Counted from the stretch's first letter, positions 15,281-54,600 are shown. The stretch is 64,000 nt of DNA from Monocercomonoides exilis PA203 (GCA_001643675.2 LSRY02000046.1:124001-188000), one strand, 5' to 3'. The notes: generated by a model from the letters alone, not told the origin. Made by a program: numbers and translations.

Positions 15281-16125
15281 TTGTGACAGACGAGGCTTCA
15301 AGTTATTTGTCAGGTCACAGAGCTATAGTTAAAATAATAAGAAAAGTGGGTCAAATCAACTTATTCAAAAAATAAAGTCTGGGTCAATAAATCACCTTAG
15401 TCTTTCTTTGGTTTTCATAATTTTGTTAATAACAGTTAACCAAATAATCCTTTCAAAGGCAAAATAAAAATATATTTTCTTAGAAAATTAATGAAAATCG
15501 AAATAACCGATTAGATCAGTTCCTTTAAAAAAAAAATTTTTTTTTAATATGCATAATTTTTTATCAAATGAATATAATTACGAATAGACGAATTGTTTCA
15601 TTCATAAAAATTCAGATCTTTTTCTCTTTGTCATTTCGAAAATTAACAGAAAAAATATTAACAACAGTGATATAAATCTTTTTAAACAAAAGTTGAATGG
15701 ACGAATAGAAGGAATTTTCTTCTTTTTTTTCAATGTTTCACAATGAAAATTTTTGAGAGATTGGTTGGGATTACAAATTTTCATAATACAAAAAGAAGGA
15801 GTACAAGAAGTGTGGATCAATAATGTGTTTAAGTGATAATTTTCGGTATCATGCCTTTTTTCGGTGAATGAATTATTTTTTGGCACAAAGAAATGTGCTA
15901 AATCCTTTTCAAAGATACGTTATATACCTTCAAATTATTGTCTTTAAAACACATGTTTTCACTGAAAGGCAGAGAAGTGCATTTATGTTTTTTCACAAAA
16001 GTATTTGATTGATCTCAAAGCGTTTACAACAAATATTTTTTTCATAAATTTTGATGGTAAAAAGATGATATCAAAAAGATTCACACATTTGACAAAGGAT
16101 TCTGTTCTGTATTGAATTTTCATAT
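15281..16125. repeat. Copy B (left part) of the inverted duplication; left flank of the giant element
   Basis: Reverse complement of 3369-4214. Begins at a poly-T tract corresponding to the A-tract inside the MITE at 4172. Confidence 0.95.
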
Positions 16126-16600
16126 GGGTGATTTTTTTTGATATCATAAAAAATTACGAAGTTTGATCATTAAAAATTTTCATTAAGGGTGGGGTTGATA
16201 AGAAATTATTTTTATAAAATAATACAAAAATATTGTTTAATTTATAATTATTATTAATTATTTGTTGATTTTTATTTGTTTTCAATTGATTTTATTACAT
16301 ATTTTGAAAAAATTATTTAAAAATATTCGAAGATATCGAGAATTCAATAAATAGAACAAAACATAAGTTATCTTGTTTGAAAAGCATGATAATGGTTGTT
16401 TCAATACTCAATAAATTAATTTCTTTTATAAAGAATTGTTAAATAATGTTATTGCATAGAATTTTATAAATTGATTATGAAGATCTTGAAACATCTATTG
16501 AAAACGAATAATTTTCATTAACACATATAGAAAAATATGATGGAAACGCATGATATTTGTCGAATAAGCTATTGTTTTTTGTTAATAATTGTATTTTAAT
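16126..16600 (+). repeat. Left terminal arm: 28-bp TIR (16126-16153) plus degenerate long arm
   Basis: Colinear weak matches to the right arm at offsets ~60 (ATTAWGGG...TGAT), ~230 (AGAACAAAA) and ~440 (AATAASCTWWTGTT..TTGTTAAT). Confidence 0.7.
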
Positions 16601-16699
16601 TAATAATTCTTGAAATTAGTTATTTAGATTAATTGATCAAAGCTATTAAAAAAATTACAAAAGAAACAACATGAAATTTAAGAATTTCTCTTCAGATAA

Positions 16700-19600
16700 T
16701 TTTAAATCTTCCATAGAATGAAAATCTTCACTTGAACTTTTTCCTTTTCCCCTCTCTTTATCCTTCATCCTCTTCCTCGTCTTTCATCCTTCATCCTGAT
16801 ACTGCCTCCTCAGTTGCTCGGCTTTTGCAGGCTGCTCTTTTTATGTGCAGACTCCACAAACACCTTTTTCATATGCAACTGTGGAAGCGATTGAAGTGCG
16901 TGCGTCTTATAACAACTGCGCCCTCTCCTTTTCATGTATATTGTGTCAGTTTCTGCATCCACTTCCTCTGAACTCAAATCCCTCTCAGTCTCGTTTTCTT
17001 TGCTCACTGTCGCTGCCCTCGATGTTATCAGCCCGCCCATACTAGCCGGAAAGACTGTCTCGAGGTTGGCTGCCACAGACATTAGAAATGTCTTCGCTTT
17101 GGGCTTTGCCAACATCACCAACATCGTGCTGTCATGCAACGGGACAGTTCTAGGGGGAAAGCTAAGAGGAGATGTGCAGAAGACTGTGCTGCCTAGGCGT
17201 GAGTGTTCACCAGTTGCTCGCATTGATTTGCATCCTCATCCAGTGCATCATCACTTGCTCAACAAACAGCGACTTCCTCTTTCTCGACTGCTCCCACAAA
17301 GCTGTCGCATCTGCAAACACCATTTCCATCCTCACTCTCCGCTAAGCCTTGAATAACGCCTTTGCGGAAAAGTATATCTTTCCCCAGTGCTGCAGCATCC
17401 AAGCCAAAACAACGAATTCCTCTTTTCCCTTCACTTTTTCCAACTCTCTCTCGTCACAGAAGCCTCCTTTTGCGACACCAACTCCTCCCGTCCCGGCCTC
17501 AACTTCGATGTCGGTCACGATCTCATCCTCTTCTTCTTCTACTGCGCCCAACAGATATTCGTCGATAAAGCCACCAGATCATCCGCTTGCACATTAATCC
17601 ACTGCATCGATAACACTCGTCAATATCTGCTGGATCTCCTCCTTCTCTTTCGAAGCCCATATCTCTCTTTCCATAATCCGATTCTGGTTTATCTCCAGAA
17701 GTCTTGATCTTGTTCATTTGAACACCATCAGTTGGCTTCCGTTGTGTTTCTCAATGGCTGCATCATCCTTTAAGCCACCTCTCCTTCAAATGTTCCTTCG
17801 CATCCTCCCTTTTTTCTCCTTCCAACCAACGTGTCTGCCTCAACTCTAAGCTTCTTTGTGCCTGCAAAAACGCCACTCACCTCTCCAACGCTCCTGTTCA
17901 TCCCTTTTGCCTCTTTCCTTATGCTTCTTGTTCTCTCACTGCTTACTCCCTTAATCTCTTCCACATCAACCTCTCAGTTCTCAAAGTAACTTCAACTTTG
18001 CTTATGTTTGACGATGAATCAATAAGCATCTTCGAACATCTTTTTATAACAGTCCTCGCCATTGTTAGCAAAAGCATAGCTCTTCTTTATCTTTCTGGAA
18101 TAAAAATGTCAGAAAGCTCCTTCATCATGATGTGTTCCGCCTTCACTACCATCTCCCTCACCTAGCTCAACAGTTTTGAACGTGTTGACCGATATCTGCT
18201 CAACATCAACAGCTCAATCATTCGGAATTATCCCTCCACCTTCCATAACAGCAACTGCTCTAGCTTTTGTGTACTCCTCATTGCCTAACCCTGGAAAGGC
18301 TACTGAATGCTTTTTCATTTACTCACATAGCAACTAAACGGTGGATATTCTTTCCTCTGCTTCGCCTCTAAACTCCCTTCCATGATGATTGTTGCAATGC
18401 TCCAAAGAGCATATGAAAAAGAAGATACGGACTGAATGATTCAGACATTCAACGAACTCTTTTTGCTTCATTGTTGCGTACTGTTACTGTTCGTCGACGT
18501 CTTCTCTTCAAACTTCTCTCCATTTCTATTTAACTTTAACATTTATCAATATCTTCATTTTTTTCTTTCAAATTTCCAATCATCATTTATTGACAAAACA
18601 AATTCTTCTTCTCTTTATCTTCATTCTCTTCATTCACTTATCATCTTCTTTTCTTTTTTTAAGAAGTTGATTTCTTTATAAATTCCATTCTTTTTTATTT
18701 CTGCTATTATCCCTTATGAAGATGCAAAAAATGAGAAATACGATTAGAAAAAGAAGAAAAAGCAGTAGTGGTAGTAGTAGAAGAGGAAGAGGAAGAAGAG
18801 GAAGAGGAAGAAGAGGAAGAAGAGGAAGAAGGAGAAAAAGAAGAAGAAGAAGAAGAAGAAGGAGCAGCAGCAGAAGAAGGAGAAGAAGAAGGAGAAGAAG
18901 AAGGAGAAGAAGAAGAATTGAAATGGAGTTGATTTTGATATGGATGAGGTGGAGTTGAAAGAAGATTATCATTTTGAAGAGGAAGAGTAAGAGTAAGAGT
19001 AAGATGTTGATGATGAGGAGAAGAAGGAGAAGAAGAATTTGAAATGAAAGATGGTGAATTTGACATGGATGATGATAAAGAAGAAGAATATGACATGGAA
19101 GAAGAAGAAGAAGAAGAAGAAGAAGATGATGATGATGAATTCAATGAAATTCCCCCTTCTCCCAACATATTCATTGAATTGGACCTTTTATGCATTTCTT
19201 TTCCTTCTCTTTCTTTTCCTTCTCTTCCTTCTCTTTTTCTTCCTCCTTTCTTCTTCTTCTTCTTTGCATTCACATTCGATTTCTTTGTTTGAACTTCTTC
19301 TTTTTCTTCTCCTCCTTCTTCTTTTGTCAATTTGACATATTTCATGTCATTTTGATTTGACATGTCTGTTTTCAACTGAGTTGCGGAATTATCTCGGAAA
19401 AAATGGAACGGCCACGAACGGGGGAATTTATTTTTGGTGATTTTTTAATTTTTGAATTATTTGAAGAAGAAGAAGGAGAAGGAGAAGAATAAGAAGTAGG
19501 AGAAGAAGCAGAACGAGAAGAAGAAATTGAAATGTTCATGTTATTTGGAGAACTAGCTTCAGTAAAGATAGGAAGATTATGCAAAAGATTATCTTGTTTG

Positions 19601-22600
19601 AAAGAAGAAGTAGAATTAAAAGAAGAAGAATTTGAAAAACATATTTCTTCTTCTTCTTTTTCTCTTCCTCTTCTTCCTTCTCTTCTTCTTTCTCCTTCCT
19701 TCTCTAATAACTCTTCTCGCTAATTCATTTATCATCTTCTTTAGTATCATTTTCTCCTTCATTTCCTGAAGAAGAACTGAATCTTTGTCTATTTCATACA
19801 ATTTGAGTGCTATTTCTGCTGGAATAAGAGAAGGATCTAATGAAAGAGAAGAAGAAGAAGATGATGATGAATTTTGAGGAGAAAGATGAGAAGGAAGAGA
19901 AGAAGAAGAAGTATTTAATAGAGAAAGAGAAGAATTTTGAGGAGAAAGACAAGAAGATGATGAAAGAGAAGAAGAATTTTGAGGAGGAGGAGGAGGAGGA
20001 GGAGGAGGAGAAGAAGAAGAAGAAGAAGAAGAAGAAGAAGAAGAAGAAGAAGAAGAAGAAGAAGAAGAAGAAGACTATGAATTAGATTGTAGCTATGAAA
20101 TAAGCAGAGTAAGGAGGACAGTTGCAGGTGAAGATGAAAGAGCATCTTTTAACAAATGAGAAAGAATTCGAGAAAGTTGACTTCGCATCGTAGAATTCAA
20201 AGGAATTGTTCCAGATGGCTGGGAGAAAAGAAAGAGAAGGAGATGTTCGCTGATAACGCTGAAGTGAAAGAGAATGAGTCGAAGGAAAAGGGAGGGAAAC
20301 TGAGGATGGAGAATTTTTTGATGTGAATGACGGAGAAGAGGGAGAAGGAGAAGGAGATTGCGAAAGCAAAAAGAGAGGAAACTGAGAGGAGGTGAAGCTT
20401 GTCTGAAGCTGATGATGAAGAATTGCTGAGAATTAGTCTTTCTTTATCTGATAGGGAAGTTCTCCTCCTCATCCACTTGCTGTTCGTGATGCATTTATTG
20501 CATGCCAACGGAAGTTGTATTAGCTCCATCAGCAGCAGAGTTTGAAGATCCACTCAGTTTTTGAGAATATGTCGTCATGCTCGATTCCAATGAAGTTGAC
20601 TGAGGCTCAGATGTTAGCTGAAAAGAAGCAAAAGCGGAATGTGTGGCTTGTTGTTCGAATGCAGCGCCAACAGCCTTCAACCGCCGAATGAGAGAGGTAG
20701 AAATGGACATTTTAGGAGAAGAGGAAGGTTTTTGATCATGGTGTGTCTCGAATATGGCTGATATTTTGTGGAGCAAGTCCTTCTTCACCATCAACCAGTG
20801 ATCAGCGGTGACAACAGCGTTGAGTGCAGTGCGCGTGGCCAGCGGACGAAGCAGCAGGCGATTGGACTACGCGGCAGAAGGGCAGAGGGGCTGCGTGGAG
20901 AATAAGATGATGGAAGGTGTTGTGATGAAGGATAGCATGGACCGAGAAATGGAAATAGAAGCGACACAAAACGTGAATAGAGAAGGTATAGAGAACATGA
21001 AGATGAAGTGAAAGATGCTGAAAGCAGCTTTGAAGGCAGAGTGCGGACGATAGAAGTGAGTGGATGAGAAAGCATGAGAGGGCACACGTTGACAAGAGGC
21101 TCCCACAAAAATTTGAGAGAAGAAGGCAGAATCGAATGCTGCTTACCTTTCTGTGGATGCTCAATGCGCAGCGGAACAACCTGAAAAGATGGATTTGTCA
21201 GTTCGAGCAGAGTTTCTCCGATGGATGGGACATATGCCGTTCATTGAGGAGGAACTAAAATTGCATTTTCTGAAACAGACAGCAGAAGTTGTTGGTCTTC
21301 GAAAAAGACAGACGAAGCAAACAAAAGCGGGTCAAGCAGAATATTCGCATTGATTGCTTAAGACTCTCTTTTTATTGCATACAAAGAGAAATTATTTTCA
21401 TCATTCTTTCTATTGATCTTGTTCTGCACATCAGGAATAGTGCTGAAGATTCCCCTCTCTTCACAGAACAGCTCCGCCGTTCCATTTGCAGCTTCTCCTC
21501 CTTCCACAGCTGCCCTTCTTTCTCCTCTCCACACATTCATCTCCTTTCTCATATTCATAATCATTTGTGCATCTTTCACTGCATCTTCTCCTCCCAAGCT
21601 GAACAGCCTCGTGCCTCACAGCAGATTCAGAAACAAGTTCGCATCATTCGCCAATATTCCCCCTGTTGCCCCGGCATGAGATGATGGAATCGTAATGGGC
21701 TTCAGAATCTGCGGCAACTTGAGGTGGTCAAAAAATGGTACAGCGCCTTTCAGAGTGAGTGGAACAAAGTAGCACCTTCTTTTTGCCTTATCTTCTGCAT
21801 CGACCGCACAAACAGCGTCTCCAGCCCTGTCTTCTGTCTGTATTCACTCCCAGTCACAGAATTGTTCCCAAAGTCTTCCACTCCTCCTCCTCCTCCTCCT
21901 CCTCCTCCTCCTCCTCAACTATCTTCTCCATTTGCATTGGCATGCCAGTCTAACAAGACATACTTGCCGAAGAAGAAGCAATCACAAACCCGTTTTCCGC
22001 AGCTGTTCAAAGGTGTGCCTGAGTTGTTCTGCCGAGTGCTGCTATGATGGCAGACAAGACAAGATGCCTTCATGGCACAGAAACAGCAATGAAAATTGTG
22101 ATTGCTGTGCCTTAGGCGCGGGTTCTGCCGGGCTTCTCTGCTGACGTCTGAGCCAATTGTGTTCTCGTCTTCTTCTTTCTCTCCATTTTCCTTTGAAGAC
22201 AAGGCTGAAGGAAAGGACAGCAATAGAGGGGTCGGACTATGCTCTCCGCAGACGATGGATGAGGTGTGTGAGAAAGAAACATGCGACTTCTTCTGAGTTC
22301 TCTTTTTGAATTTCGATGAAAGCGTCTTTTACTGCGTGCGAGGGAAGCGCAGGGCAGGGAGTGTGCTTCAGTCTTCTTCTCTTTCTGCTGCCTTGTATGT
22401 TTTATTGGCATTTGAGGCTTCAGCAGATCATGTTATGTCCAAACTGTCTTCATCAACACTTACGTCACTATCATCGCTATCTTCATTTTCATCATCTAAA
22501 CTATCTTCTTCTGCTTCTTCAGTGTCTGCTGAACCTGCTCCATTCACCCTCTCTCTCCTCTCTTCATTTCGAATCAAACAGGAAATGTTCTTTCCTTTCC

Positions 22601-23950
22601 CTCTCGATCAGATCTTTCTTTTAAGCTTCTTTGACTTGCTTTCCTCTTCCTGAACATGATTTGTAGGAAGCAGAAGGTCTGCTGACTTGGTTGTTGGGAT
22701 AATTCTTCCATGTGTCAGTTTCAGTGCGTTCTCCTTCAGCTTCGTAACTGCTTCCTTCTTCTGCCTCTCTTTCATCTCAGCTGCGTTATATATCGTTTCA
22801 ATTGAGCTGTTTTCTTTCATTTTTGTTGAGTTGAATGTGGATGAGGTGTCATATTCAAACACAGATCTGCTCTTTTTCGGTGTCTGTCAGCTGGCTTGTG
22901 TGCTTGTCAAAAACATCTTTGCACTGAGAATCCTGTCTAACTCCACGTCTTCCTTTTCCTCCTCCTCCTCCTCATCATCATCCACTTCCTCACCATATTC
23001 ATTCTTATCGGTGTCACTTCTGCTTCTTCCACTTTTCTCACTCATATCAGACTTAAAAGAGTCAAAGGCGATGCAGCCATCTGCCACACGTAGCAGCTCC
23101 AGCTCTTTCGAAAGCAGCTCACTCAGCGCATCATATAAATTCAACGTCGGACTTGCCTTTGATCTAATTACTTTTCCTTTCGCTTTTCATTTCCCTTTCA
23201 CGCTCGCTTTCTATCTCCGCTATGCTCCTCTTTGCTTTCCATACTCCAATTCATCTAATGGAAGCTCATCAAACACAGAAATAATTCTTTCCTTTTCTTT
23301 CTCCTATCTCCTTTTCCCCTTCTCATCTTTTTTCACTTTCTTTTTGTTTCAAAACTATCCTCTTGCTCGCCAATGTTACAACAATTGATTCAAAACGCCT
23401 CGTATTCTGCGCTGTAGCATTTGCATTTGTGCATCCTTTGCTTTTTTTCCTCTACTGACTCAACCCCATCGCAGTCATCATTCGCTTCCTCTTCATCTTC
23501 GGTGGTCTTCTTCTTGAAATAGCCAGCGGTACTTGTTCCATCCCTACACGGAATAGCTTCTTCTTCTTGCTGCTATAATTATTATTATTATTAATGTTAT
23601 TTCCACTTCCTCCCATCTTGTTTGTCAGCCCCAGCACTTCTGATTTAAATTCTGGTGGAGCTATTTTTGAGCCTGTATGTTCTTTTTTATAGATTGTCCG
23701 CTTGAATGCAACAAGCGCTTTTAACCTGTTGCCTTTTTTGAGTGCTCTCCCGAATGCAGTTGATGGCATGCTCAGCAGTGAAACAGAAGAAGAAAAGGAT
23801 GAAGAATTCTTTGTCAAAGGACTTGAAATCGTAAAAGAGGGAGCTGGAAAACCAACATTCGATGAGGCAGAGGCAGAAGAAGATAAAAGACTTGGAAATA
23901 ATATTTCAAAATAAAAATAAATAAAATTCCTTGAAGGGCAAACATAGAAT
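16700..23950. pseudogene. Mosaic of decayed coding-like fragments on both strands, joined by Ser/Glu trinucleotide tracts
   Basis: Higher-GC, codon-like blocks broken by stops, with apparent strand switches near 20.8 and 22.3 kb. No recognisable intact domain. Confidence 0.5.
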
Positions 23951-25087
23951 AATTAGCTTTCACTCCATTGGAAACGGAAAACAGCAAAATTCTACTCAGG
24001 ATTCAGTTGGATAATAGTGAAAGAATTTCGAATAGGAAAAGAGAAAAAGCATTCGAAATATTAAATATAAGCTTTCATAAGTTGCAAAAAATAAGCAAAA
24101 ATAGAGTATCAAACACAAAATTTCAAACCTTTTTCTTCATTATAATCCCATTTCAAATTTCAATTTTTTTATTGATCTGCAATTTGCAGAAATGCTTTTT
24201 TGATATATCAAGATAATATTTATATGTTGTTGAAGTGTTTCATGAGGTTAATAACGATTTCTGCAAATTTCCACGTTATAAAAAAGTTTTCATGATCATT
24301 GAGATCTTTTTTTATCAAAAAGTTTTTTGTTGATCTGTTTAAAAAAATTCATAATGATTTTTTTTTGATTTTGTTGGTTTTCAATATTTGATCTTGCAAT
24401 ATGGAAAAAATAAAAATGATTTCAATCAGAAAAATGCTTGTATATTCGAATTTGAGTTTTTTTCGAAATGGAAAAAATATCAATGAAATGAAAAAAATTG
24501 CGTTAAAAAATAACAATTGTTCAACAATCAATATGACATAAAAAAACAAAAAGTGCTTCATGATGTCAATCATTAATAAAATAGAAAACAATCAGAATAT
24601 TTTTAATCAGATTCAATAACATTCAAAAAAACACAATTCTGTCACATAATCATAAAAACAATCACCAAATGTCAACTAAATGTCAACAATTTTGAACAAT
24701 AAAAGATATCAGAAAAAGTAATACTATAACAACAAATTCACGGTATCAAAGACAATTCCTAACAAAATAGAATACTTATAAAAAAAGTTCAAAAACTTAC
24801 TTGTCTTTTCTCCCTCTGTTTTCCACCCACTCTTCACTTTCTGATATTTCTCTTCCTTTGACTCAAAAAGATCAAATTCAACATAGAAAAAAGACAGACA
24901 CAGTGATAAAACATCACTTCACACTCTCAACAACTCTCCCATCCAAAAACCTCACCCAAAGATCTTTGAAATCCCTCACAACTCTCTCTATTAATGAATC
25001 TCGATTAATACACACATAAGCGGGACAATAACCAATTTAATAATAGGGACATTATAGGGACAAAAACCACAAGAAAACAATCGGATT

Positions 25088-25229: not shown

Positions 25230-28200
25230 TTAATAGGGGACACCATTAAAACAATTTTGAGATTCATTAAAAGAAGAAGAGTCAAGAAGAAGCTCAAATC
25301 TCCTTGAAAGAAGATCTTGAGAAGATTGAGAAAGAAGAGAAGAGTTTGATGATGTGTTACCAGAGTTGAAGGTCTTTCTTGAACGTTGCACTTTTTCTTT
25401 CATTGTCGAAGATTCGATGGCAACCAGAGAGCGTTGAGGAAGATATCCAACAGCAGATGCGCAGACAAATGAGCCCTTGCGCTCAAAATACAAGTAGTCT
25501 TTCATGTGGGGAACTGACAATGATGGCCATGAGATTTGTTGAGATGGTACATATTCTTCAAAGTATCTCTCATGCACAGAGTCATTGATAGATGTTGAAG
25601 ATGGGGAAGAGTTTGATGATGATGTTGAGAAAATGTTTGATTGAGAAGTTGAAGAAGCTGATGTCGAAGTGTTCATATTGTTTTCGAAGAAGCTGATCAA
25701 GTCATGAAGTGTGGTGATGTGTTCTGTCGAAAGATTGTTGTCAATTGCATTAACTAACGCACCAAATTCACTATCACATATATTTTTTCCATGGTGCTCA
25801 GCGAAGAAATTAAGTTGTGTGTTTTTCTTTTTAAGAAGTTTTGATTGTTTTGAAAGGATGAAGTGAAGAAGGAAGCGATTTCGGTTGTGTGGACCCGAAT
25901 CGCAGAAGAACTTAAAGGTGTGAGTGTCTGAGAAGAAGTGTCTTTTGATCACAGATTCCAGACACTCAATAACAAATCTGTGATCATTTGAGAGGCAGTC
26001 GGAGAAGAAGTTGAAAGTTCGTTTTATTTTTTGGTTATTAATTTTTTGAAGAGAGATGATTGTGAATTGAGAAACCTGTTGATAATTAAAGAATTCTTGT
26101 TGAAGTTGATTTTTTCTGATGGGGAGTTTCCACTTCTCTTTGAAGTCGAAGACGAAGACTGCTTCTCCCTCTTTCAGATTATCAACAGTTGATTGATAAT
26201 GTTTTCGTTGCATTTCTGCAACAAGACGATGTTGTCGAAGAAGTTTAAGAGTCTGAAATTCTGCAGGAGATAGTCCATTTTTGTTTTGTGAAGATTTTAG
26301 TTTGTTCTCCAAATAGCTTAACTTCTCACACATTCCACAAAGATCAGTACGCCTTTTCGCTTTGGAGAAGTTGGTAGTGAGTTTATAAAAGTGAGACAGA
26401 GAAACTTTGATGTTTGTTTCTTCTGTAAACTCTTTCCATAATTTCGTCTTGGGCTTGAAGATTAATCTCTTTTCGTTGGGAGAAAAGATGCCCGTTTTCT
26501 TTCGTTTTTCTTTCAGTGCTTCCAATCCATAACTTGTTGAAATTGACGAAGAGAGTGGAGGAATGGAAGTTGTTCGATGAGGTGGTGTGATGAATGCAGA
26601 TGACGTAGCAGTTGTTGTTGTTGACGATGATGATGAGTTATTTGAAGTGTTATTATTTGATGTTTCTGAAGAAGATGATGAACCACCAAATTGAATAGTA
26701 GATAGTGTTGGTTTTGTTTTTTCCTTGATATAGAATGAAAGTGAAGGAACGTAGCCTTGAACATAAAGATCTTTCCATGATGAATTCCAGTTTTCTTTGT
26801 CCAATTCGGAGACATCAAAATCGTTGCAAATATTCCACAATGCCTCACTTCCTGCCTTCCTTCTCACAACTGCGATGTAATGTCCGTTTTGTTGATCCAA
26901 ACGCTTAAATAGTATTTGTCCAACAAGATGGTAAATGATAGTTTCTTGATTATCCTTTTGAAGATGTTGAATATATTCTGTAGAAAACCCTTTACAAAAT
27001 GTGCGCTGGTTTACTCGATCAGTTTCAATCAGAAGCGTTCTAGAAGGTGCAGAACTAGCAGAATCAGTGCATTCATGACAGAGGGCTAGCACCTCTGGAA
27101 ATGCAGCCATTTCCTCCCATCTAACAGCACAGCATTTTTCGTTGCATTTATTGCAATAAACACAATTCTTTCCTTCCAAAACTTCAGTTGCAAAGAGAGA
27201 AGATAGTCCATTATGAGTCGAGGAAGAATTGATAACGACATTGTTACATATTTCATTGAAGTTTGATGTGATTTGTTGGCATTTTTGGCATTTGAGATGA
27301 GTTATGATAACTGGATTGAAGGAATCCTTGCTTATCAACTCATCTTTTTGAAGAAGTCGGTGAAGATTTTCAAACGCCTCAGTAACATTTTGTTGCTGTC
27401 TGCTGCCATAGTTGCAGAAATCTTCCCATTTGTCAATAAGAGATGAGACCCATGAACGCACTGACGTTCCATCTTTAGCCAATTGATGACAAACACTTTC
27501 AACACGCGAAGATGTGTTCTTCAACGATGTTTGTTTTTTGAAAAAAGATGGTTTTTGAATAGTTATTGAAGAGAAACATTGAAGAAGAGAAGCCAAATAG
27601 CATGTGTTGCCTAAGTTTGGCAATCCTTTTGCTATTTGTGATGATTTATTTGAAGAATTTAATGAATTTGAGACAGATTGTGAATGAGAATGATTTTTTG
27701 TTGAATTTTCTTTAGCATTCTTTTTTGAAATATTCTTTGAAGAATTATTTTGAATAGATATTTCATTATTTGAAGGTTGAATGCTTTGTTGTTGAACGGT
27801 TGAAGTGTTATTCTCTTTCGAAAATGAAGAAAAGAGAGTTTGAAATGCTTGAGGTGGAATTAATGTGGGTGAAGTGGCATATTCAACTAATTGCTCATTC
27901 ACAAACACATCATTGTTGAAAAAGGAAGTTGAAGTTTCTTCAATAGGAGAAGAATTTTTATTTTCTTTTTGTTTCTTTTTGAAAGATGAAAAAGATGAGG
28001 AAGATGAGGAAGATGAGGAAGATGAGGAAGATGAGGAAGAAGAGGAAGATGAGGAAGATGAGGAAGATGAGGAAGATGAGGAAGATGAGGAAGATGAGGA
28101 AGATGAGGAAGATGAGGAAGATGAGGAAGATGAGGAAGATGAGGAAGATGAGGAAGATGAGGAAGATGAGGAAGATGAGGAAGATGAGGAAGATGAGGAA

Positions 28201-39019: not shown

Positions 39020-39640
39020 CATCTTCATCATCTACATCTTCATCTTCTTCATCTTCTTCATCTTCTTCATCTTCTTCCTCTTCTTCCTCTTCTTCCTCTT
39101 CTTCCTCTTCTTCCTCTTCTTCCTCTTCTTCCTCTTCTTCCTCTTCTTCCTCTTCTTCCTCTTCTTCCTCTTCTTCCTCTTCTTCCTCTTCTTCCTCTTC
39201 TTCCTCTTCTTCCTCTTCTTCCTCTTCTTCCTCTTCTTCCTCTTCTTCCTCTTCTTCCTCTTCTTCCTCTTCTTCCTCTTCTTCCTCTTCTTCCTCTTCT
39301 TCCTCTTTTTCCTCTTCTTCCTCTTCTTCCTCTTCTTCCTCTTTTTCCTCTTCTTCCTCTTTTTCCTCTTCTTCCTCTTCTTCCTCTTCTTCCTCTTCTT
39401 CCTCTTCTTCCTCTTCTTCCTCTTCTTCCTCTTCTTCCTCTTCTTCCTCTTCTTCCTCTTTTTCCTCTTTTTCCTCTTCTTCCTCTTTTTCCTCTTCTTC
39501 CTCTTTTTCCTCTTTTTCCTCTTCTTCCTCTTCTTCCTCTTTTTCCTCTTCTTCCTCTTTTTCCTCTTCTTCCTCTTCTTCCTCTTCTTCCTCTTCTTCC
39601 TCTTCTTCCTCTTCTATTTCCTCTTCTTCCTATTTTTCTT
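39020..39640. repeat. (TCTTCTTCC)n poly-Ser minisatellite
   Basis: Direct inspection; a similar tract lies at 31870-32070. Confidence 0.95.
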
Positions 39641-40092
39641 CATCTTCTTCCTCTCTCCTTCCTCTCTTCTTTCTTTCTTTTCTTTTCTTATTCTTTTATT
39701 TTTCTCTCCTTTTCTTCTCTTTCTCTTTTAATTCTTTCCTCTTATTCTTTCTCTCTTCCTCATTCAAATTATCATCTAACTTCTCTTTCAACTGCTGAAA
39801 ATCAATCAAATTCTGATTTTCATTCAAAATCTCTTCTTTCTTCCATTCAACAACAAAAAGATGAAAAAGATTCAATGAAACAATTAAAGAAACAGTAGCT
39901 ATTTTAATCATAAAAATTATTTTTTGTAAAGATCTTTTGATTTTTGTTTTGATATTTCTTTATTTGTTTCAACATAAGTTCTGAAAATTATGACGAGTGA
40001 TTAATTGAACTTTTTTTAATATATTGGCTTTAACATAATATTGATAACTTTCCATTATAATTTCATTTTCTGGAGATTTTATTTTTTTTATC

Positions 40093-43000: not shown

Positions 43001-46000
43001 ATTCCATTTCCCTTCTGTTGAGCAAAACGCCCAGTCATCCACATTCTCTTTGTATTCTGCTGATTCACTGCTTGCTTCTGGCACCACTGCTGATAATGCC
43101 ACCTCGAGTGATGCTTCTGAACAGTCAGCACAGCCACCCCAGTCATCTGCACATGCTACTGCACCTGCATCATCATCATCTGCTGCTGCTACTACCACTA
43201 CATCTTCTATTTCTTCTGCTTCATCATCATCTTCTTCTTCGAATTCTTCTGCTTTTTCTGTTAAAATGTCAAATACACCTTCTCCTTTGAATGTTGGAGC
43301 ATCGCCAGTTTCCTCACCTCTGCCTCCACATAACTATATAATCGTTCCCACAAATGCATCAGCTTCTCCTTCAAAAACTGCATATTCACCTCAATCTTCT
43401 TCTTCTTCTTCTTTTTCTTTGTCTCCTTCTTCCTCAACATCTTCATCTCCATCCACCACAAAAAAGCTTCTTCCTCTTCTTTTTCTTCCTTTTCCTCTTC
43501 CTCTGCATCTGACCCTGCCTCTCTCTATTCTTCTGCCTCGATCTCTGCTCGTATTCCTGCCCTGATGCCTATCGAAAGTACATTCCATTTCCCTTCTGTT
43601 GAGCAAAACGCCCAGTCATCCACATTCTCTTTGTATTCTGCTGATTCACTGCTTGCTTCTGGCACCACTGCTGATAATGCCACCTCGAGTGATGCTTCTG
43701 AACAGTCAGCACAGCCACCCCAGTCATCTGCACATGCTACTGCACCTGCATCATCATCATCTGCTGCTGCTACTACCACTACATCTTCTATTTCTTCTGC
43801 TTCATCATCATCTTCTTCTTCGAATTCTTCTGCTTTTTCTGTTAAAATGTCAAATACACCTTCTCCTTTGAATGTTGGAGCATCGCCAGTTTCCTCACCT
43901 CTGCCTCCACATAACTATATAATCGTTCCCACAAATGCATCAGCTTCTCCTTCAAAAACTGCATATTCACCTCAATCTTCTTCTTCTTCTTCTTTTTCTT
44001 TGTCTCCTTCTTCCTCAACATCTTCATCTCCATCCACCACAAAAAAAGCTTCTTCCTCTTCTTTTTCTTCCTTTTCCTCTTCCTCTGCATCTGACCCTGC
44101 CTCTCTCTATTCTTCTGCCTCGATCTCTGCTCGTATTCCTGCCCTGATGCCTATCGAAAGTACATTCCATTTCCCTTCTGTTGAGCAAAACGCCCAGTCA
44201 TCCACATTCTCTTTGTATTCTGCTGATTCACTGCTTGCTTCTGGCACCACTGCTGATAATGCCACCTCGAGTGATGCTTCTGAACAGTCAGCACAGCCAC
44301 CCCAGTCATCTGCACATGCTACTGCACCTGCATCATCATCATCTGCTGCTGCTACTACCACTACATCTTCTATTTCTTCTGCTTCATCATCATCTTCTTC
44401 TTCGAATTCTTCTGCTTTTTCTGTTAAAATGTCAAATACACCTTCTCCTTTGAATGTTGGAGCATCGCCAGTTTCCTCACCTCTGCCTCCACATAACTAT
44501 ATAATCGTTCCCACAAATGCATCAGCTTCTCCTTCAAAAACTGCATATTCACCTCAATCTTCTTCTTCTTCTTCTTTTTCTTTGTCTCCTTCTTCCTCAA
44601 CATCTTCATCTCCATCCACCACAAAAAAGCTTCTTCCTCTTCTTTTTCTTCCTTTTCCTCTTCCTCTGCATCTGACCCTGCCTCTCTCTATTCTTCTGCC
44701 TCGATCTCTGCTCGTATTCCTGCCCTGATGCCTATCGAAAGTACATTCCATTTCCCTTCTGTTGAGCAAAACGCCCAGTCATCCACATTCTCTTTGTATT
44801 CTGCTGATTCACTGCTTGCTTCTGGCACCACTGCTGATAATGCCACCTCGAGTGATGCTTCTGAACAGTCAGCACAGCCACCCCAGTCATCTGCACATGC
44901 TACTGCACCTGCATCATCATCATCTGCTGCTGCTACTACCACTACATCTTCTATTTCTTCTGCTTCATCATCATCTTCTTCTTCGAATTCTTCTGCTTTT
45001 TCTGTTAAAATGTCAAATACACCTTCTCCTTTGAATGTTGGAGCATCGCCAGTTTCCTCACCTCTGCCTCCACATAACTATATAATCGTTCCCACAAATG
45101 CATCAGCTTCTCCTTCAAAAACTGCATATTCACCTCAATCTTCTTCTTCTTCTTCTTTTTCTTTGTCTCCTTCTTCCTCAACATCTTCATCTCCATCCAC
45201 CACAAAAAAGCTTCTTCCTCTTCTTTTTCTTCCTTTTCCTCTTCCTCTGCATCTGACCCTGCCTCTCTCTATTCTTCTGCCTCGATCTCTGCTCGTATTC
45301 CTGCCCTGATGCCTATCGAAAGTACATTCCATTTCCCTTCTGTTGAGCAAAACGCCCAGTCATCCACATTCTCTTTGTATTCTGCTGATTCACTGCTTGC
45401 TTCTGGCACCACTGCTGATAATGCCACCTCGAGTGATGCTTCTGAACAGTCAGCACAGCCACCCCAGTCATCTGCACATGCTACTGCACCTGCATCATCA
45501 TCATCTGCTGCTGCTACTACCACTACATCTTCTATTTCTTCTGCTTCATCATCATCTTCTTCTTCGAATTCTTCTGCTTTTTCTGTTAAAATGTCAAATA
45601 CACCTTCTCCTTTGAATGTTGGAGCATCGCCAGTTTCCTCACCTCTGCCTCCACATAACTATATAATCGTTCCCACAAATGCATCAGCTTCTCCTTCAAA
45701 AACTGCATATTCACCTCAATCTTCTTCTTCTTCTTCTTTTTCTTTGTCTCCTTCTTCCTCAACATCTTCATCTCCATCCACCACAAAAAAGCTTCTTCCT
45801 CTTCTTTTTCTTCCTTTTCCTCTTCCTCTGCATCTGACCCTGCCTCTCTCTATTCTTCTGCCTCGATCTCTGCTCGTATTCCTGCCCTGATGCCTATCGA
45901 AAGTACATTCCATTTCCCTTCTGTTGAGCAAAACGCCCAGTCATCCACATTCTCTTTGTATTCTGCTGATTCACTGCTTGCTTCTGGCACCACTGCTGAT

Positions 46001-49000
46001 AATGCCACCTCGAGTGATGCTTCTGAACAGTCAGCACAGCCACCCCAGTCATCTGCACATGCTACTGCACCTGCATCATCATCATCTGCTGCTGCTACTA
46101 CCACTACATCTTCTATTTCTTCTGCTTCATCATCATCTTCTTCTTCGAATTCTTCTGCTTTTTCTGTTAAAATGTCAAATACACCTTCTCCTTTGAATGT
46201 TGGAGCATCGCCAGTTTCCTCACCTCTGCCTCCACATAACTATATAATCGTTCCCACAAATGCATCAGCTTCTCCTTCAAAAACTGCATATTCACCTCAA
46301 TCTTCTTCTTCTTCTTCTTTTTCTTTGTCTCCTTCTTCCTCAACATCTTCATCTCCATCCACCACAAAAAAGCTTCTTCCTCTTCTTTTTCTTCCTTTTC
46401 CTCTTCCTCTGCATCTGACCCTGCCTCTCTCTATTCTTCTGCCTCGATCTCTGCTCGTATTCCTGCCCTGATGCCTATCGAAAGTACATTCCATTTCCCT
46501 TCTGTTGAGCAAAACGCCCAGTCATCCACATTCTCTTTGTATTCTGCTGATTCACTGCTTGCTTCTGGCACCACTGCTGATAATGCCACCTCGAGTGATG
46601 CTTCTGAACAGTCAGCACAGCCACCCCAGTCATCTGCACATGCTACTGCACCTGCATCATCATCATCTGCTGCTGCTACTACCACTACATCTTCTATTTC
46701 TTCTGCTTCATCATCATCTTCTTCTTCGAATTCTTCTGCTTTTTCTGTTAAAATGTCAAATACACCTTCTCCTTTGAATGTTGGAGCATCGCCAGTTTCC
46801 TCACCTCTGCCTCCACATAACTATATAATCGTTCCCACAAATGCATCAGCTTCTCCTTCAAAAACTGCATATTCACCTCAATCTTCTTCTTCTTCTTCTT
46901 TTTCTTTGTCTCCTTCTTCCTCAACATCTTCATCTCCATCCACCACAAAAAAAGCTTCTTCCTCTTCTTTTTCTTCCTTTTCCTCTTCCTCTGCATCTGA
47001 CCCTGCCTCTCTCTATTCTTCTGCCTCGATCTCTGCTCGTATTCCTGCCCTGATGCCTATCGAAAGTACATTCCATTTCCCTTCTGTTGAGCAAAACGCC
47101 CAGTCATCCACATTCTCTTTGTATTCTGCTGATTCACTGCTTGCTTCTGGCACCACTGCTGATAATGCCACCTCGAGTGATGCTTCTGAACAGTCAGCAC
47201 AGCCACCCCAGTCATCTGCACATGCTACTGCACCTGCATCATCATCATCTGCTGCTGCTACTACCACTACATCTTCTATTTCTTCTGCTTCATCATCATC
47301 TTCTTCTTCGAATTCTTCTGCTTTTTCTGTTAAAATGTCAAATACACCTTCTCCTTTGAATGTTGGAGCATCGCCAGTTTCCTCACCTCTGCCTCCACAT
47401 AACTATATAATCGTTCCCACAAATGCATCAGCTTCTCCTTCAAAAACTGCATATTCACCTCAATCTTCTTCTTCTTCTTCTTTTTCTTTGTCTCCTTCTT
47501 CCTCAACATCTTCATCTCCATCCACCACAAAAAAAGCTTCTTCCTCTTCTTTTTCTTCCTTTTCCTCTTCCTCTGCATCTGACCCTGCCTCTCTCTATTC
47601 TTCTGCCTCGATCTCTGCTCGTATTCCTGCCCTGATGCCTATCGAAAGTACATTCCATTTCCCTTCTGTTGAGCAAAACGCCCAGTCATCCACATTCTCT
47701 TTGTATTCTGCTGATTCACTGCTTGCTTCTGGCACCACTGCTGATAATGCCACCTCGAGTGATGCTTCTGAACAGTCAGCACAGCCACCCCAGTCATCTG
47801 CACATGCTACTGCACCTGCATCATCATCATCTGCTGCTGCTACTACCACTACATCTTCTATTTCTTCTGCTTCATCATCATCTTCTTCTTCGAATTCTTC
47901 TGCTTTTTCTGTTAAAATGTCAAATACACCTTCTCCTTTGAATGTTGGAGCATCGCCAGTTTCCTCACCTCTGCCTCCACATAACTATATAATCGTTCCC
48001 ACAAATGCATCAGCTTCTCCTTCAAAAACTGCATATTCACCTCAATCTTCTTCTTCTTCTTCTTTTTCTTTGTCTCCTTCTTCCTCAACATCTTCATCTC
48101 CATCCACCACAAAAAAAGCTTCTTCCTCTTCTTTTTTCTTCCTTTTCCTCTTCCTCTGCATCTGACCCTGCCTCTCTCTATTCTTCTGCCTCGATCTCTG
48201 CTCGTATTCCTGCCCTGATGCCTATCGAAAGTACATTCCATTTCCCTTCTGTTGAGCAAAACGCCCAGTCATCCACATTCTCTTTGTATTCTGCTGATTC
48301 ACTGCTTGCTTCTGGCACCACTGCTGATAATGCCACCTCGAGTGATGCTTCTGAACAGTCAGCACAGCCACCCCAGTCATCTGCACATGCTACTGCACCT
48401 GCATCATCATCATCTGCTGCTGCTACTACCACTACATCTTCTATTTCTTCTGCTTCATCATCATCTTCTTCTTCGAATTCTTCTGCTTTTTCTGTTAAAA
48501 TGTCAAATACACCTTCTCCTTTGAATGTTGGAGCATCGCCAGTTTCCTCACCTCTGCCTCCACATAACTATATAATCGTTCCCACAAATGCATCAGCTTC
48601 TCCTTCAAAAACTGCATATTCACCTCAATCTTCTTCTTCTTCTTCTTTTTCTTTGTCTCCTTCTTCCTCAACATCTTCATCTCCATCCACCACAAAAAAA
48701 GCTTCTTCCTCTTCTTTTTCTTCCTTTTCCTCTTCCTCTGCATCTGACCCTGCCTCTCTCTATTCTTCTGCCTCGATCTCTGCTCGTATTCCTGCCCTGA
48801 TGCCTATCGAAAGTACATTCCATTTCCCTTCTGTTGAGCAAAACGCCCAGTCATCCACATTCTCTTTGTATTCTGCTGATTCACTGCTTGCTTCTGGCAC
48901 CACTGCTGATAATGCCACCTCGAGTGATGCTTCTGAACAGTCAGCACAGCCACCCCAGTCATCTGCACATGCTACTGCACCTGCATCATCATCATCTGCT

Positions 49001-50917
49001 GCTGCTACTACCACTACATCTTCTATTTCTTCTGCTTCATCATCATCTTCTTCTTCGAATTCTTCTGCTTTTTCTGTTAAAATGTCAAATACACCTTCTC
49101 CTTTGAATGTTGGAGCATCGCCAGTTTCCTCACCTCTGCCTCCACATAACTATATAATCGTTCCCACAAATGCATCAGCTTCTCCTTCAAAAACTGCATA
49201 TTCACCTCAATCTTCTTCTTCTTCTTCTTTTTCTTTGTCTCCTTCTTCCTCAACATCTTCATCTCCATCCACCACAAAAAAAGCTTCTTCCTCTTCTTTT
49301 TCTTCCTTTTCCTCTTCCTCTGCATCTGACCCTGCCTCTCTCTATTCTTCTGCCTCGATCTCTGCTCGTATTCCTGCCCTGATGCCTATCGAAAGTACAT
49401 TCCATTTCCCTTCTGTTGAGCAAAACGCCCAGTCATCCACATTCTCTTTGTATTCTGCTGATTCACTGCTTGCTTCTGGCACCACTGCTGATAATGCCAC
49501 CTCGAGTGATGCTTCTGAACAGTCAGCACAGCCACCCCAGTCATCTGCACATGCTACTGCACCTGCATCATCATCATCTGCTGCTGCTACTACCACTACA
49601 TCTTCTATTTCTTCTGCTTCATCATCATCTTCTTCCTCTTCATTTTCTCCTTCATTTATTACATCAATGCAGAATTTACTAACTCAACATCAACAGCAAC
49701 AGCAACAACCTTCTCTTCAAATTTCCACAAACATATTCAAAGAAAGTGAAGAAAATGATTCTTTTTCATTTACACATCATATCAATGATTTTTGTATTTC
49801 TTTTGAAGCCACTTCTTCATTTCACATAAATAAAAAAGAAGCAAAGAAATGCAAAAAACATTCGACTTTTTCATCCAAAATTACTAAACAATCAAAAAAG
49901 CAAAATTCTTCTTCATCTTCTTCTTCTTCATTATCTTCGAAAGTTAATTCAAGATCGTGCGTTTCAATTCTTCTTTCTTCTCAAAGAGGATTGAAAAACA
50001 ATGGCAGTGTGTGCTCTCTTTCTGCCATTTGTCAATGCATGGCTTCTATTAATCTTGAATTTATAAACATTTCTAAAATGAACAGTATGCAAAAAACATT
50101 CATGCAGCTGTTTCATCTTCTTCGAATCTCTTCGTTTAATTTTAATGTGTGGGATGGAGGTCAGATTAATAAATTTTACGACACTTATCTTGGAGGGAAG
50201 AATCAGCCAAAAGAACTGTCTGTTGTTTTTGAAAGACTTCTCAAAGTTCTTTCCAAAAATTGTGATGAAATAAACGATATGTTTTCTATCATTTCACAAA
50301 ATGTTTTAATGTGTGTTCATTGTAATGATTACTCCATTTCAAAAAGGGATGATCAGTTTTTTGTTACAATTAGAGGATCAGATGTTGTTTCTGGTCTTCA
50401 AGATTTATTAACTTGTAATTCTTTTTTAGTTGAGAAGAGAGAAGGAGAGTGTGTATCATGTCACAAAGATAGACAATTTTTGAAATATGTTCGTTTTTTG
50501 TATTTTCCAAAAGTGTTAAGTGTTTTATTCAACGTTGGTGATTTTTTCACTGTTACAGCTCCTCCTCTTACTATTCATTTTGTTGATTCAGGGTTAGGGC
50601 CTGAGGATTTAAAAATATTTGATCCAAAGGCTTCCTCTGAAGATTCATTTTTTGCTTCTGGTTCTATTGATGATGTTGTTGTTTATGAATTTGTTGGATG
50701 TGTTATTCATTCAAGTGTTCTTTATGAGCAAGGGCATTTTTTGGCCATTGTGAAAGAAGATGTTTCTAAACCTAGTTCCATTTCAAAGTTTATTGAGTGT
50801 AATGATCATATTGTTTCAGAAATTATTCCTGAAAAATGGAATGATTATTGGAATCATCTCGCTTTGGAAAATTTCCATCCTTCTATTTGTTTTTTCAAAA
50901 AAATAGAAATATCATAA
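40093..50917 (+). CDS. Very large Ser-rich tandem-repeat protein with C-terminal USP (C19) domain; ~3570 aa if the homopolymer frameshifts are errors
   Basis: Exon 40093-40276, intron GTTTG...TAG, exon from 40398 in frame. USP motifs: GLKNNGSVCSLSAICQCM, CVHC/CVSC, QGHFLAIVK, FIECNDHIV. Frameshifts occur only in A7/T5 runs within the repeat. Confidence 0.7.
40483..49635 (+). repeat. Tandem array of 582-bp (194-codon) units, ~15.7 copies
   Basis: MPIES start recurs at 40658, 41240, 41822, 42403, 42984, 43565, 44147, 44728, 45309, 45890, 46471, 47053, 47635, 48218, 48800 and 49382. Confidence 0.97.
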
Positions 50918-51129
50918 TTCTTTTCATTTTTTTTTTTTGATTTTTATTTTTGAGAATTTTCTCAATTGCAAAAAAACAAATTTAACTTTTCTATTCATTT
51001 TTTTTCTTTTTTGTTTTTTTTCATATCATAATAATAAATCATTGTTGGAAATTTTTTTCATAACTTTTTTTTGAAAAAATGATAATTCAAAATTGAATGA
51101 TAATCCAATTACTGTGAATAATTGAATAT

Positions 51130-51609
51130 TAAATATTTTTTACTTGATTAACAACAACATAAGGTTATTAGTTGTTTTCAAAGAAAATATTTTCTTCAAA
51201 GAGTACTATTATGAAAGAAAAATAGATTTTTAATGGATAAACATTTTTTAACTTAAAAAATCCATATCTCTGAAAGAAGAAAGAATAATTAAATAAATAA
51301 TGTCATATTTTATTCATTAATAAACGTCGTTTGAAAAACATTTAATGATTAAAAATTTGAAAAACAATATTCCTTGAAAAAAATATTTTTTTGTTCTTTT
51401 TTTTTTTATAAAAAGTGAATCATTCAAAAATGTTCAAGAAAAATATATTTAACTAAAAAACAATGCAAAAAGGATATTTTGTTGATATTTTTGTATATTT
51501 TCGAAAAACAATTAATCCTTTTCAAAAAAATTGATTGATCACAACAGCCCATAATTTTATTTTTTTTTCAATTTTTGATCTTTTTTTATGACATCAAAAA
51601 AAATCACCC
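51130..51609 (-). repeat. Right terminal arm: 28-bp TIR (51582-51609) plus degenerate long arm
   Basis: Reverse complement begins GGGTGATTTTTTTTGATGTCATAAAAAA and shows colinear weak similarity to the left arm. Confidence 0.7.
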
Positions 51610-54600
51610 ATATGTCATAACGACAAATTCAGAAAAGCCGTTTTCTCAGATACACATGTCAAAATTTTTTTAAGAAGTTCTTTTTGTTTAATTTTCAAAT
51701 AAAGAGAAATTTCATATTTCGATCAAATTTCTGTTTCCACTCATCTAATTTTGCAATTATAAAAACAAAATCTTGACAATGTTATTATTTCCATTTATAT
51801 GAATTTTCATGATTGGGAACGGAAATTTGATCGAAATAGGAAATATTTATTCTTTTAGAAAATTTAACAAAAAGGAACTTTTCAAAAAAAATTTGACACA
51901 TATGAGAAATTTAAGATTAGAAATATCGACATCTTTTCTTAAGCTTCTCATAAAATTTTTTCGATTGTTAAATCAGTTCATTTGATTGCCTCAAAATATC
52001 ATCAAAGATATAGTATTTAGAAACATGAACATTTCAAGACATGTTTAAGTTTCAAACCTATGCCAAAATTTTTAACAGCTGGGAAAAGATGGACGGATCA
52101 TTGAAATTGTTGAAATGATGCTTTGACGTAGAAAATTCGTTGAGTGCAAAATAAACAACCGTAGACAAAATTCTGTATAGTTAATAACAATAATAATAAT
52201 AAACCGATGAATATTGCTTGGAACAATTTCTTTCATGCGGAAACTTTTAAAAGGACCCAAGAAATTTATTATTTTTCATCTCGAAATATGGATTTTTTCA
52301 GAAATTTTGGTCTAATTATTCATTATGCAATTATTTTCTGATTGCACATGGATGATCTTGAATTCTAAATTAGCTTCTTCAACGAATTATTTCTTAACAC
52401 AAATGATACATGGGAATGGTTCAGAAATGAAGTGTTGAATCAAAGATACAAAGAATGTACAAATTGCCATTATGAAATTTTTCTCAATGAATGAAATCCT
52501 AATTTCCATGCAATGGAGGTGCTTCAGATGCAATCAAACAATAAGCCTGCTATCAAATCTTTCAAAAGAAAATCAAAAATATGAATTTTCAAAAAATGGA
52601 TTTTTTCATTTATAAATGGATGAAGCTTTCAATTTCTCAAACTTCTTCACTTCTTGGTGTCCATAGAAACACAGTTGGTTTTTACTATTCCCTTGCAACA
52701 GCAGCAATGGTGCAGAGCGCAGAATCATCATTTCAGCCAATTGGAGGAGAAAATTCAATTGTCGAAATTAACAAAGCAATTTTGAACAAAAGAAAATATT
52801 ATAAAGGCAGATGGAAGAAGCAGATCTGGCTATTTGGAGCTGCACAAAAAACTCAGGACGGGAAACAAGGATGCTTTTTTTATTTTCAGAGTCCCTAAAA
52901 GAAAAAAAGACACATTGCTACCAATCATTCAGGCAAATATCATTCCAGGAACTGTGATTCACAGTGATGAATGGAGAGCCTTCTCATCTCTCAGTGATCT
53001 CGATTATGGCCACAAAACAATCTGCCAAAAATATCATTTTTAATACTCAGAAAGCGAAATATGCACAGATATGATTCAGGGACTTTGGAGTCAATTTCGA
53101 AGAGATTTGCATCGTACGAGGATGAAGGAAAATTCATTGATGATTATCTTTCTTCTTTTGTGTTTCTAAAAAGAAAACAATCAACGTTTGTTGAAACTGT
53201 GAGAGAAATATTTCCAATGTGAAGCGGAAGAATAAGTTGAAGAAGAAAAGGAAGGCCACAAAAAAGATGATGAATTGGATGAACAAGTTTTATCTGAAAA
53301 ATATGAAGAAATTTCTGAGGACACCATGGAAGTTAGAGATGGAGCAAAGCATTCTGAATATGAACACGAATAAAAAACAGTAGCATTGCTTAAATCACAT
53401 TTGTTAAGTAATATTTGTTTGCATATCAATCTCAAATTGCAAATTTTTTTAAAATTTTCTATCAAATTTTTAAAAATTTTTGATCAAAAAATAATTATAC
53501 AAAAAATTCAATATTTTTTTTCGAGTTTCCGCAAATAGTTGAAAGAAAAAAACATATGTGCACGACATGTTATCATCATAGCTTCAACATATGTTAATTT
53601 TATTCACGGTCGTAAATTGTGAATTAACCTATGTTTCAATGTTCTTTTGTTGTGCCCACTTGTTAAAAAGAAAATAATTATCTTGTTAAAATTGGTGAAA
53701 GGGAAAATCAAAATTTGTTTTTGCTGAGAGGCAGAACGAAACAATGTTTCTCGAACAACTGAACAGGCAAAGAAATTGAAGGGACGCAACGAAACTGAAG
53801 ATCTTCTTCATTTCTGTTGAAATCACAAATGACATTGTGAAATGTTTTCCCAGAAAAGTCTGAAATCGCTTCGAAAACATCATAACAGGATTGTCGATGA
53901 AAATAAAAAGAAAGAAATAGACAATGAAATTGCAGTGCAATGCCAAAAAAGCATTTGGTGAAAAGACGAGGATGCAAATAGCAAAATCAAATACACATCA
54001 TTCCTCTTCTTGCGTTCTCATCTTCAATTCAACTCTTTCTCAGCAAATCGAAATGAATGCCCTGAATTGGTTGTTTGAAGCATGCCTCTCTTTCTTCATC
54101 GTTGACGTCATATTCTTCACAGAATCCAACAAAAGATGCCAGCTTGTTGGATGTCCCACTCGAATTGATGATGATCTTGCTGGCTTCAGTTTCTCCTTTT
54201 GTGAAGACAGTTCAACAACTTTCATGAGCGTGGTGCAAAAAAAAGATATATTTTGATTTTTTCTGAATACAGAAAATGTGGCTTATCACTTTGTAATTAT
54301 CTCAAATAAAACAATTTGTTTCTTCTTCTTCTTCTTCTTTTCTGCTTTGACTGTTGATGCGCCTTGTTGTGCTTGATTGAGTCATCTGAGTCGAAGTGAA
54401 AGTGGAAGAAGACGAAGAAGGATGAAAAGGTGGAATGACGATGAATTTTATGAAGAAGAAAAAGAGGAAGAAGAAGATTGGCCAATTGAGACAAACAAAG
54501 TGGATCTGCTGAAAAGACAATAACATTCATTTTGAAATGTTTGAAGAATGTGACTCTTCAGTCTGTGTGAATGAAAGGCACTCAAAAAAAGAAAGAAAAA

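Follow-up and report, generated by a model that had tools for sequence, protein, structure and literature searches.

Sola2 DNA transposons that carry Fanzor1 genes have been described in the dictyostelids Dictyostelium fasciculatum (DFa-1/2/3) and Polysphondylium pallidum (PPa-1/4/5) (Bao and Jurka, 2013; PMC3627910). It has also been established that ubiquitin or SUMO proteases accompany transposition proteins, as in Ginger1 (OTU or Ulp1), Mutator-Ulp1 and the OTU/VTD domains of Helitrons, where the VTDs are proven active and have been proposed to protect transposition proteins; the T. vaginalis protein XP_001314237.1 combines transposase_11, of a different superfamily, with Peptidase C19 (PMC2836005, PMC9741609). 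Capture of host gene fragments is known from Pack-MULEs, which are non-autonomous, mostly of 1-2 kb and below 7 kb, and from enlarged En/Spm (CACTA) elements, which reach 16-20 kb (PMC6431247). We have analyzed a stretch of 64,000 nucleotides from Monocercomonoides exilis PA203 (LSRY02000046.1:124001-188000, hereafter the window), in which a 35.5-kb element at positions 16126-51609 is very probably an autonomous Sola2-type cut-and-paste DNA transposon, with a transposase fused to a ubiquitin-specific protease (USP) and exchangeable arms of host origin.

The M. exilis element resembles the Sola2-Fanzor1 elements in the order of its transposase motifs (RTDxCxxC, DFKE, SxxLxH, WxDxxxH, HGKSxxD), in its 4-bp AWWT target site duplications (TSDs), short terminal inverted repeats (TIRs) and large size (10-15 kb in Sola2-Fanzor1), and in combining a common transposase part with an exchangeable arm. 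It differs from them in that its core occupies the middle and both arms vary, its cargo consists of broken host genes, with no Fanzor in the open reading frames (ORFs) scanned, and a USP is inserted in the transposase, while lengths of 17-36 kb, TIRs of 28 bp and about 100 copies compare with TIRs of 12-22 bp and 2-12 copies. As in Ginger1, Mutator, Helitron and the T. vaginalis protein, a deconjugating cysteine protease accompanies the transposition protein, although here it is a USP (C19) within a Sola2 transposase and many copies hold a second, free USP gene. Like Pack-MULEs and enlarged CACTA elements, the M. exilis copies hold host gene fragments caught between TIRs as decaying passengers, but those with multi-kb fragments from several donors are autonomous and of 20-36 kb. 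AWWT TSDs, a 10-15 kb size and exchangeable arms (dictyostelid Sola2-Fanzor) and fragment capture (Pack-MULEs) are already known separately; no report of a Sola-USP fusion was found in the searchable literature, nor was this combination of features, size and selection pattern found in searchable papers.

The insertion and its family

A sequence-only reading of the window had claimed a recently inserted transposon with 28-bp TIRs, flanking ATAT and an exact empty site nearby, and these points were borne out. The TIRs agree in 27 of 28 bases, both begin with GGG, and the element contains a single left and a single right end, with no additional TIR inside. Its flanks, when joined, correspond to an uninterrupted duplicate around the ATAT at 3369-3372 on the minus strand. 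Over 3372 bp the right flank shows no substitution against the duplicate and differs from it by 2 homopolymer gaps, and the left flank has 4 substitutions in 881 bp, every one in a poly-A edge. Outside that edge no substitution separates the duplicate arms over about 4.2 kb compared. The duplicate is a bounded 6.2-kb inverted segment (C43:122048-128251) whose arms are separated by an 11-kb spacer with distinct genes, and which terminates at a poly-A-like tract (window 4213-4330, 15245-15279). The simplest reading of the flanks would be that the element inserted after a very young duplication.

Filled and empty alleles joined by the assembly as a false inverted duplication, or over-expansion of the 582-bp array in the second USP gene, would also account for flanks that are practically identical and for array units that are nearly so. 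The genome searched (82.3 Mb, 101 contigs) is a nanopore-based assembly (PMC8767320), the array units differ in length by single-base homopolymer indels, possibly sequencing errors, and the reads over 49700-55500 are short unitigs from one sample. Such an artefact is nevertheless improbable: the duplication has defined ends and a spacer of distinct genes, one array unit carries 7 substitutions, and even an artefact there would leave a real element with a real TSD, 9 other copies of 19-24 kb having matching TSDs.

When the 28-bp TIR was searched in the genome with at most 2 mismatches, 397 matches were obtained (0 with a reversed control), and exact ends comprised 107 of left and 76 of right type. 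The 4-bp TSDs matched in 27 of 29 adjacent left-right pairs (P ~7e-13 under the observed TSD composition), ten of the matching pairs having non-palindromic TSDs (ATTT, AAAT, ACAT, ATGT, ATCT). The form ANNT was present at 182 of 183 ends, and AWWT at 149 of 183. The TSD is thereby settled as 4 bp, ANNT and mostly AWWT; of the three forms formally left by the palindromic target, ATAT stood, while TA and CATATG are excluded by the ten non-palindromic pairs and by the base variation seen at positions -5 and -6. Sola3 elements have TTAA TSDs, Zator elements 3-bp TWA and Tc1-mariner elements TA, and the 4-bp ANNT TSD rules out all three groups.

Twelve of the TSD-matched pairs had no transposase close by, ten measuring 4.2-6.9 kb and two 12-13 kb. 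Of the others, one measured 17.0 kb, nine fell within 19.5-23.6 kb and four within 30.4-36.5 kb, and a last one, spanning 60 kb, probably represents two elements. The sequence-only reading had named shortness of all other copies as a point that would speak against a giant element, and this is not what the length spectrum shows; autonomous copies are therefore large as a rule. They are typically of 17-24 kb, with a family mode of about 20-23 kb, so the claim of a giant element holds for the 35.5 kb but describes an upper tail in which 15 kb is the array plus one host fragment: without the array (8.7 kb) and an Ulp1 piece (6.3 kb) the copy would measure 20.5 kb and fall at the family mode. Large Sola2 elements, a group described in that reading as normally a few kb long, were already known in the form of Sola2-Fanzor elements of 10-15 kb (PMC3627910). 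The transposase domain has about 96 genomic copies at 90% or higher amino acid identity, 69 stop-free and 27 with stops, with about 49 lying in frames of at least 1000 codons; in M. exilis the family comprises about 100 copies that bear a transposase. Additional transposase families are present in the genome at 53-59% identity. Outward-facing TIR ends lie 6 bp apart in L010 (C6:990904) and about 140 bp apart on C80:1082989-1083198, where tandem or targeted insertions are possible. Related loci sought in metagenomes were not found, word-index protein searches gave matches to M. exilis proteins only, and the contigs of homologs were too short to include element ends.

The USP-transposase gene and its selection

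The core, which the sequence-only reading had missed, is a frame of 1296 codons (25233-29120, minus). It encodes a USP domain (PF00443, E 3e-13), to which USP21 is the closest solved structure, and after it a transposase for which Pfam, lacking any Sola model, has no entry. A three-exon gene is inferred from GT-AG, phase-consistent introns and from two upstream exons kept in 8 of the 8 copies read. Since homologs matching exon 2 carry this N-terminal part only about 70-170 residues upstream of the DxCxxC zinc motif, and the USP intervenes here, the USP is an insertion between the Sola N-terminal domain and the core. Relatives of the transposase number 711 among cluster representatives; in 79 homologs, D112, D194 and D236 each reach at least 90% conservation, and an HGK motif is also conserved. 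The structural model (predicted local distance difference test, pLDDT, 88) retrieved Mos1, Hermes and IstA as best PDB folds in Foldseek at low template modelling (TM) scores of about 0.3, and a DDD triad in a predicted RNase H fold is present. The Cys and His boxes, with catalytic Cys, His and Asp, are retained in 8 of 8 core USP domains and in both second-USP types. By its sequence, the core transposase is intact-looking. The poly-Ser linker of exon 3 amounts to about 240 codons in the 35.5-kb copy and is far shorter in other copies, in frame throughout.

Its motifs agree by eye, in an unscored comparison, with Sola2_DFa-2 and Sola2_PPa-1 (PMC3627910). With its DDD core, these motifs, AWWT TSDs and GGG...CCC ends, the element is Sola2-like, as had been claimed, and by the tested features it would belong with the Sola2 clade that includes the Fanzor elements of dictyostelids. 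Bao et al. reportedly described in 2009 that Sola2 TIRs end in GRG. The 28-bp GGG...CCC ends agree with this, which is a soft feature, since published PPa elements deviate from GRG.

Selection was analyzed in 8 of the about 100 copies. The transposase showed ratios of non-synonymous to synonymous substitution rates (dN/dS) of 0.02-0.07 at dS 0.27-0.57, and the USP 0.12-0.28. Changes private to one copy, which are not true terminal branches, were 70 synonymous versus 19 non-synonymous, on 160 versus 650 sites. To judge from these codon comparisons, both parts are under strong purifying selection within one genome. Current theory holds that the DNA transposons of eukaryotes have their transposase in common and that their evolution within one genome is neutral (PMC7070016, PMC13558583), and the pattern seen here conflicts with the neutral one reported for vertebrate DNA transposons. 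A tentative and rather doubtful explanation would be cis-preference of the transposase (action on its own encoding copy), or other copy-by-copy selection, with the USP taking part in the mechanism. If true, this would account for dozens of intact copies at dS 0.3-0.6 with 15-30 kb of cargo, and for copies behaving as a recombining population.

The same values could also be read as host-level selection on a domesticated multigene family with relic or rarely mobile ends, given the very low dN/dS and high dS between all copies, private changes included, and that such selection is not expected for DNA transposons within a genome (PMC7070016). We consider this very unlikely in view of the perfect TIRs and TSDs, the fresh insertion beside its own empty site, the stops in 27 of 96 domains, and the existence of non-autonomous derivatives of 4-7 kb that share these ends.

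Arms, host cargo and recombination

What seven complete copies of 19-22 kb have in common with the 35.5-kb copy is limited to the core (24430-29690) and the subterminal ends. After the left TIR, about 550 bp of AT-rich subterminal sequence is common to the family, and 42 ends could be sorted into 10 left and 7 right interior types. The features of the 35.5-kb copy are collected in Table 1.

Table 1. Coordinates in the window of the 35.5-kb element, its parts and its empty site
Feature	Position	Strand	Remarks
Empty site (single ATAT)	3369..3372	-	Other arm of the 6.2-kb inverted segmental duplication
Left TSD, ATAT	16122..16125		
Left 28-bp TIR	16126..16153	+	
Left cargo A	16700..18917		Decayed coding sequence; at least 9 other copies, 89-94%
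Ser/Glu-repeat-rich stretch	18917..20016		Without long match elsewhere
Left cargo B	20016..24100	-	Broken by stops/frameshifts; at least 24 copies, 80-85%
Inner imperfect inverted repeat (76%)	24123..24297, partner 30265-30441		Brackets the core in the copy's subfamily
Exon 3, USP-transposase	25230..29119	-	Stop 25230-25232
Sola2-type Zn motif and DDD core, exon 3	about 25650-26480	-	
USP domain, exon 3	about 26718-27632	-	PF00443
Ser-rich linker with poly-Ser expansion, exon 3	27983-28696	-	
Exon 2, Sola N-terminal domain	29171..29401	-	
Exon 1 with start codon	29506..29671	-	Inferred model, kept in 8 copies
Right cargo C	30610..31664	+	Fragment of 4594-codon host ORF C24:108189, 93% nucleotide identity
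Right cargo D	32287..38728	+	Fragment of Ulp1/C48-family host ORF C26:177324-184757, 92-95% nucleotide identity
Poly-Ser microsatellite, 9-bp period	39016..39684	+	
Second USP gene, transposase-free	40093..50917	+	USP domain about 49967-50914, Cys/His/Asp motifs kept
Array of 16 near-identical 582-bp units	40470..49650	+	194 Ser-rich codons per unit, inside the second USP gene
Right 28-bp TIR	51582..51609	-	Single mismatch versus left TIR
Right TSD, ATAT	51610..51613		

The host fragments claimed as cargo could be confirmed for several modules, traced to host ORFs on C24, C26 and C38 and known from coordinates and open-frame length (3548-6002 codons). In the left arm, the donor of cargo B is probably a 3548-codon host ORF (C38:174126; 75% amino acid identity to a sibling's ORF), and cargo B is an older capture. 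At the position of the Ser/Glu-rich stretch, siblings hold a piece of a 4056-codon host ORF (C43:738895, 95% amino acid identity). In the right arm, the donor of cargo C belongs to a large family of giant proteins, and that of cargo D is single-copy, with 6002 codons. Relative to this donor, cargo D has lost 1 kb and changes frame near 36309; it keeps the His strand but lacks the Cys region. Because the C48 matches of the donor fall within the deleted 1 kb (C26:181961) or beyond the matched stretch (C26:189641), cargo D is not a complete protease; a Pfam scan of its window ORF gave no match. Ulp1 is accordingly rejected as a working protease of the element. Of the protease genes proposed as cargo, then, the USP domains are the element's own and conserved, and the Ulp1 sequence is a broken piece of host origin in which the Cys region is missing. 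In siblings C18, C21 and C22 the two ends of the cargo D fragment are joined directly; either they lost the middle or the 35.5-kb copy regained it. Internal fragments thus seem to derive from ORFs that are open in the host and broken in the element, a feature of Pack-type transduplication, and the host-derived cargo would be a neutral passenger.

The right-arm type with the second USP gene occurs in more than 10 copies. In the 35.5-kb copy the array adds 8.7 kb, and the nearest siblings match one unit only. A truncated transposase gene was rejected as its origin, as exons 1 and 2 do not match and any relation is at most remote. Sibling arm ORFs also gave CFAP65-like and phosphodiesterase matches. 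No Pfam match to Fanzor/TnpB was obtained in 76 arm ORFs of 6 copies and the scanned window ORFs, where spliced or short pieces could escape, and Polymerase B, capsid, viral and tyrosine recombinase genes were absent among the ORFs scanned. Fanzor or viral cargo was discarded on these ORFs, as were Polinton/Maverick, Teratorn and Starship, whose hallmark genes are missing from them.

The nearest-neighbour copy shifts along the core and a neighbour-incompatibility test was significant (p<0.001), and the copies therefore recombine. The sequence-only reading had named recombination between two copies, as an explanation of the interior, among the points that would speak against it. Recombination between copies does account for the interior, which is a mosaic: the USP part of the 35.5-kb copy is closest to C36/C58/C80, and its left arm is of C1a/C7 type. 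The insertion itself is recent and the interior is an old recombinant mosaic. This mosaic and the inner inverted repeat bracketing the core would also fit a composite of two neighbouring or nested elements, with TIRs from different copies and ordinary chromosome between them, the least probable of the alternatives and largely refuted by one left and one right end with identical ATAT and an exact empty site without internal TIR, by a transposase lying antisense 9.4 kb from the left end as in other copies (7-16 kb), and by siblings C21, C25 and C18, whose right arms present these modules in an identical order, and by cargo donors that are on other contigs.

Two further loci bear on the arms. A 15-kb element with the same TIR (G000:C11:1556541-1571676) encodes a transposase of a distant family (56% amino acid identity, 1426-codon frame), and its right arm is 97% identical to that of the 35.5-kb copy, which suggests that arms may be exchanged across transposase families. 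In copies C36, C58 and C80 (L035-L036, L038-L039, L044-L045), a 500-bp, 94-98% inverted repeat surrounds the transposase gene; it also encloses a second USP gene, which is of another type and placed head-to-head, and resembles a nested unit.

Proposed mechanism and neighbouring sequences

The ends, TSD, catalytic motifs, selection pattern, modular cargo and donors can be read in the sequence itself. We propose that the encoded transposase would bind the TIRs and excise 4-36 kb as one unit, to be inserted with a 4-base stagger, and that the 35.5-kb copy would have moved recently into one arm of the young 6.2-kb duplication. Gap repair after excision could involve template switching at Ser/Glu-codon microsatellites common to the elements and to giant host genes, which would copy in host pieces and swap arms and core segments between copies, and repeats may expand afterwards by slippage or unequal exchange. 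A location of the junctions at such microsatellites is suggestive only, as 7 of 11 module junctions lie within 30 bp of a tandem repeat versus 18% coverage (p ~0.001), a statistic inflated by alignment ends that drift into microsatellites. By analogy with the proteases of Helitron, Ginger and Mutator (PMC9741609, PMC2836005), we lean slightly towards a role of the USP in removing ubiquitin from the transposase, or from chromatin or repair proteins at the cut, which would counter degradation or steer repair.

Several points weigh against an autonomous transposon moving as one 35.5-kb unit. Besides the inflated junction statistic, the low TM-scores and the short unitigs at the junction, the exon model is a prediction that was searched one exon at a time, and the 7 full autonomous copies read were all picked for exact TIRs. 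Movement of 35.5 kb in one piece would follow from the copy's own matching TSD and empty site, and the 582-bp array could have grown after insertion.

An autonomous Sola2-type transposon of this kind would extend the size range of Sola2 from about 15 kb to 20-36 kb and stand among the largest plain cut-and-paste elements in a review (PMC6431247). With a transposase and a USP naturally fused, and about 49 copies that look intact, the old proposal that deubiquitinases help transposons to escape degradation by the host becomes directly testable in one protein, and a transposase naturally moving 20-35 kb would be a candidate large-cargo tool. About 100 copies of about 20 kb (about 2 Mb) would be part of the 35% unclassified repeats of the genome, and element copies inflate the M. 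exilis gene models (MONOS hypotheticals).

The duplicated flank contains a 1.5-kb multi-copy repeat (80-88%; window 52143-53632 and 2086-2487) with an ORF that has no Pfam match; its motifs resemble those of a Merlin/IS1595 transposase fragment. A 240-bp imperfect palindrome resembling a miniature inverted-repeat transposable element (window 51657-51898 and 3084-3325) is also found beside TIR loci L004, L009, L012 and L017. The spacer holds a degenerate pogo/Tc1-like DDE_1 transposase ORF at 5317-6348 (PF03184, E 0.01) and, within 7582-15080, host genes for a thioredoxin-domain protein (7961-10771), an RNA-binding-like product by eye (ORF 11060-13111) and, on the minus strand, a papain-family cysteine protease (13778-15080).

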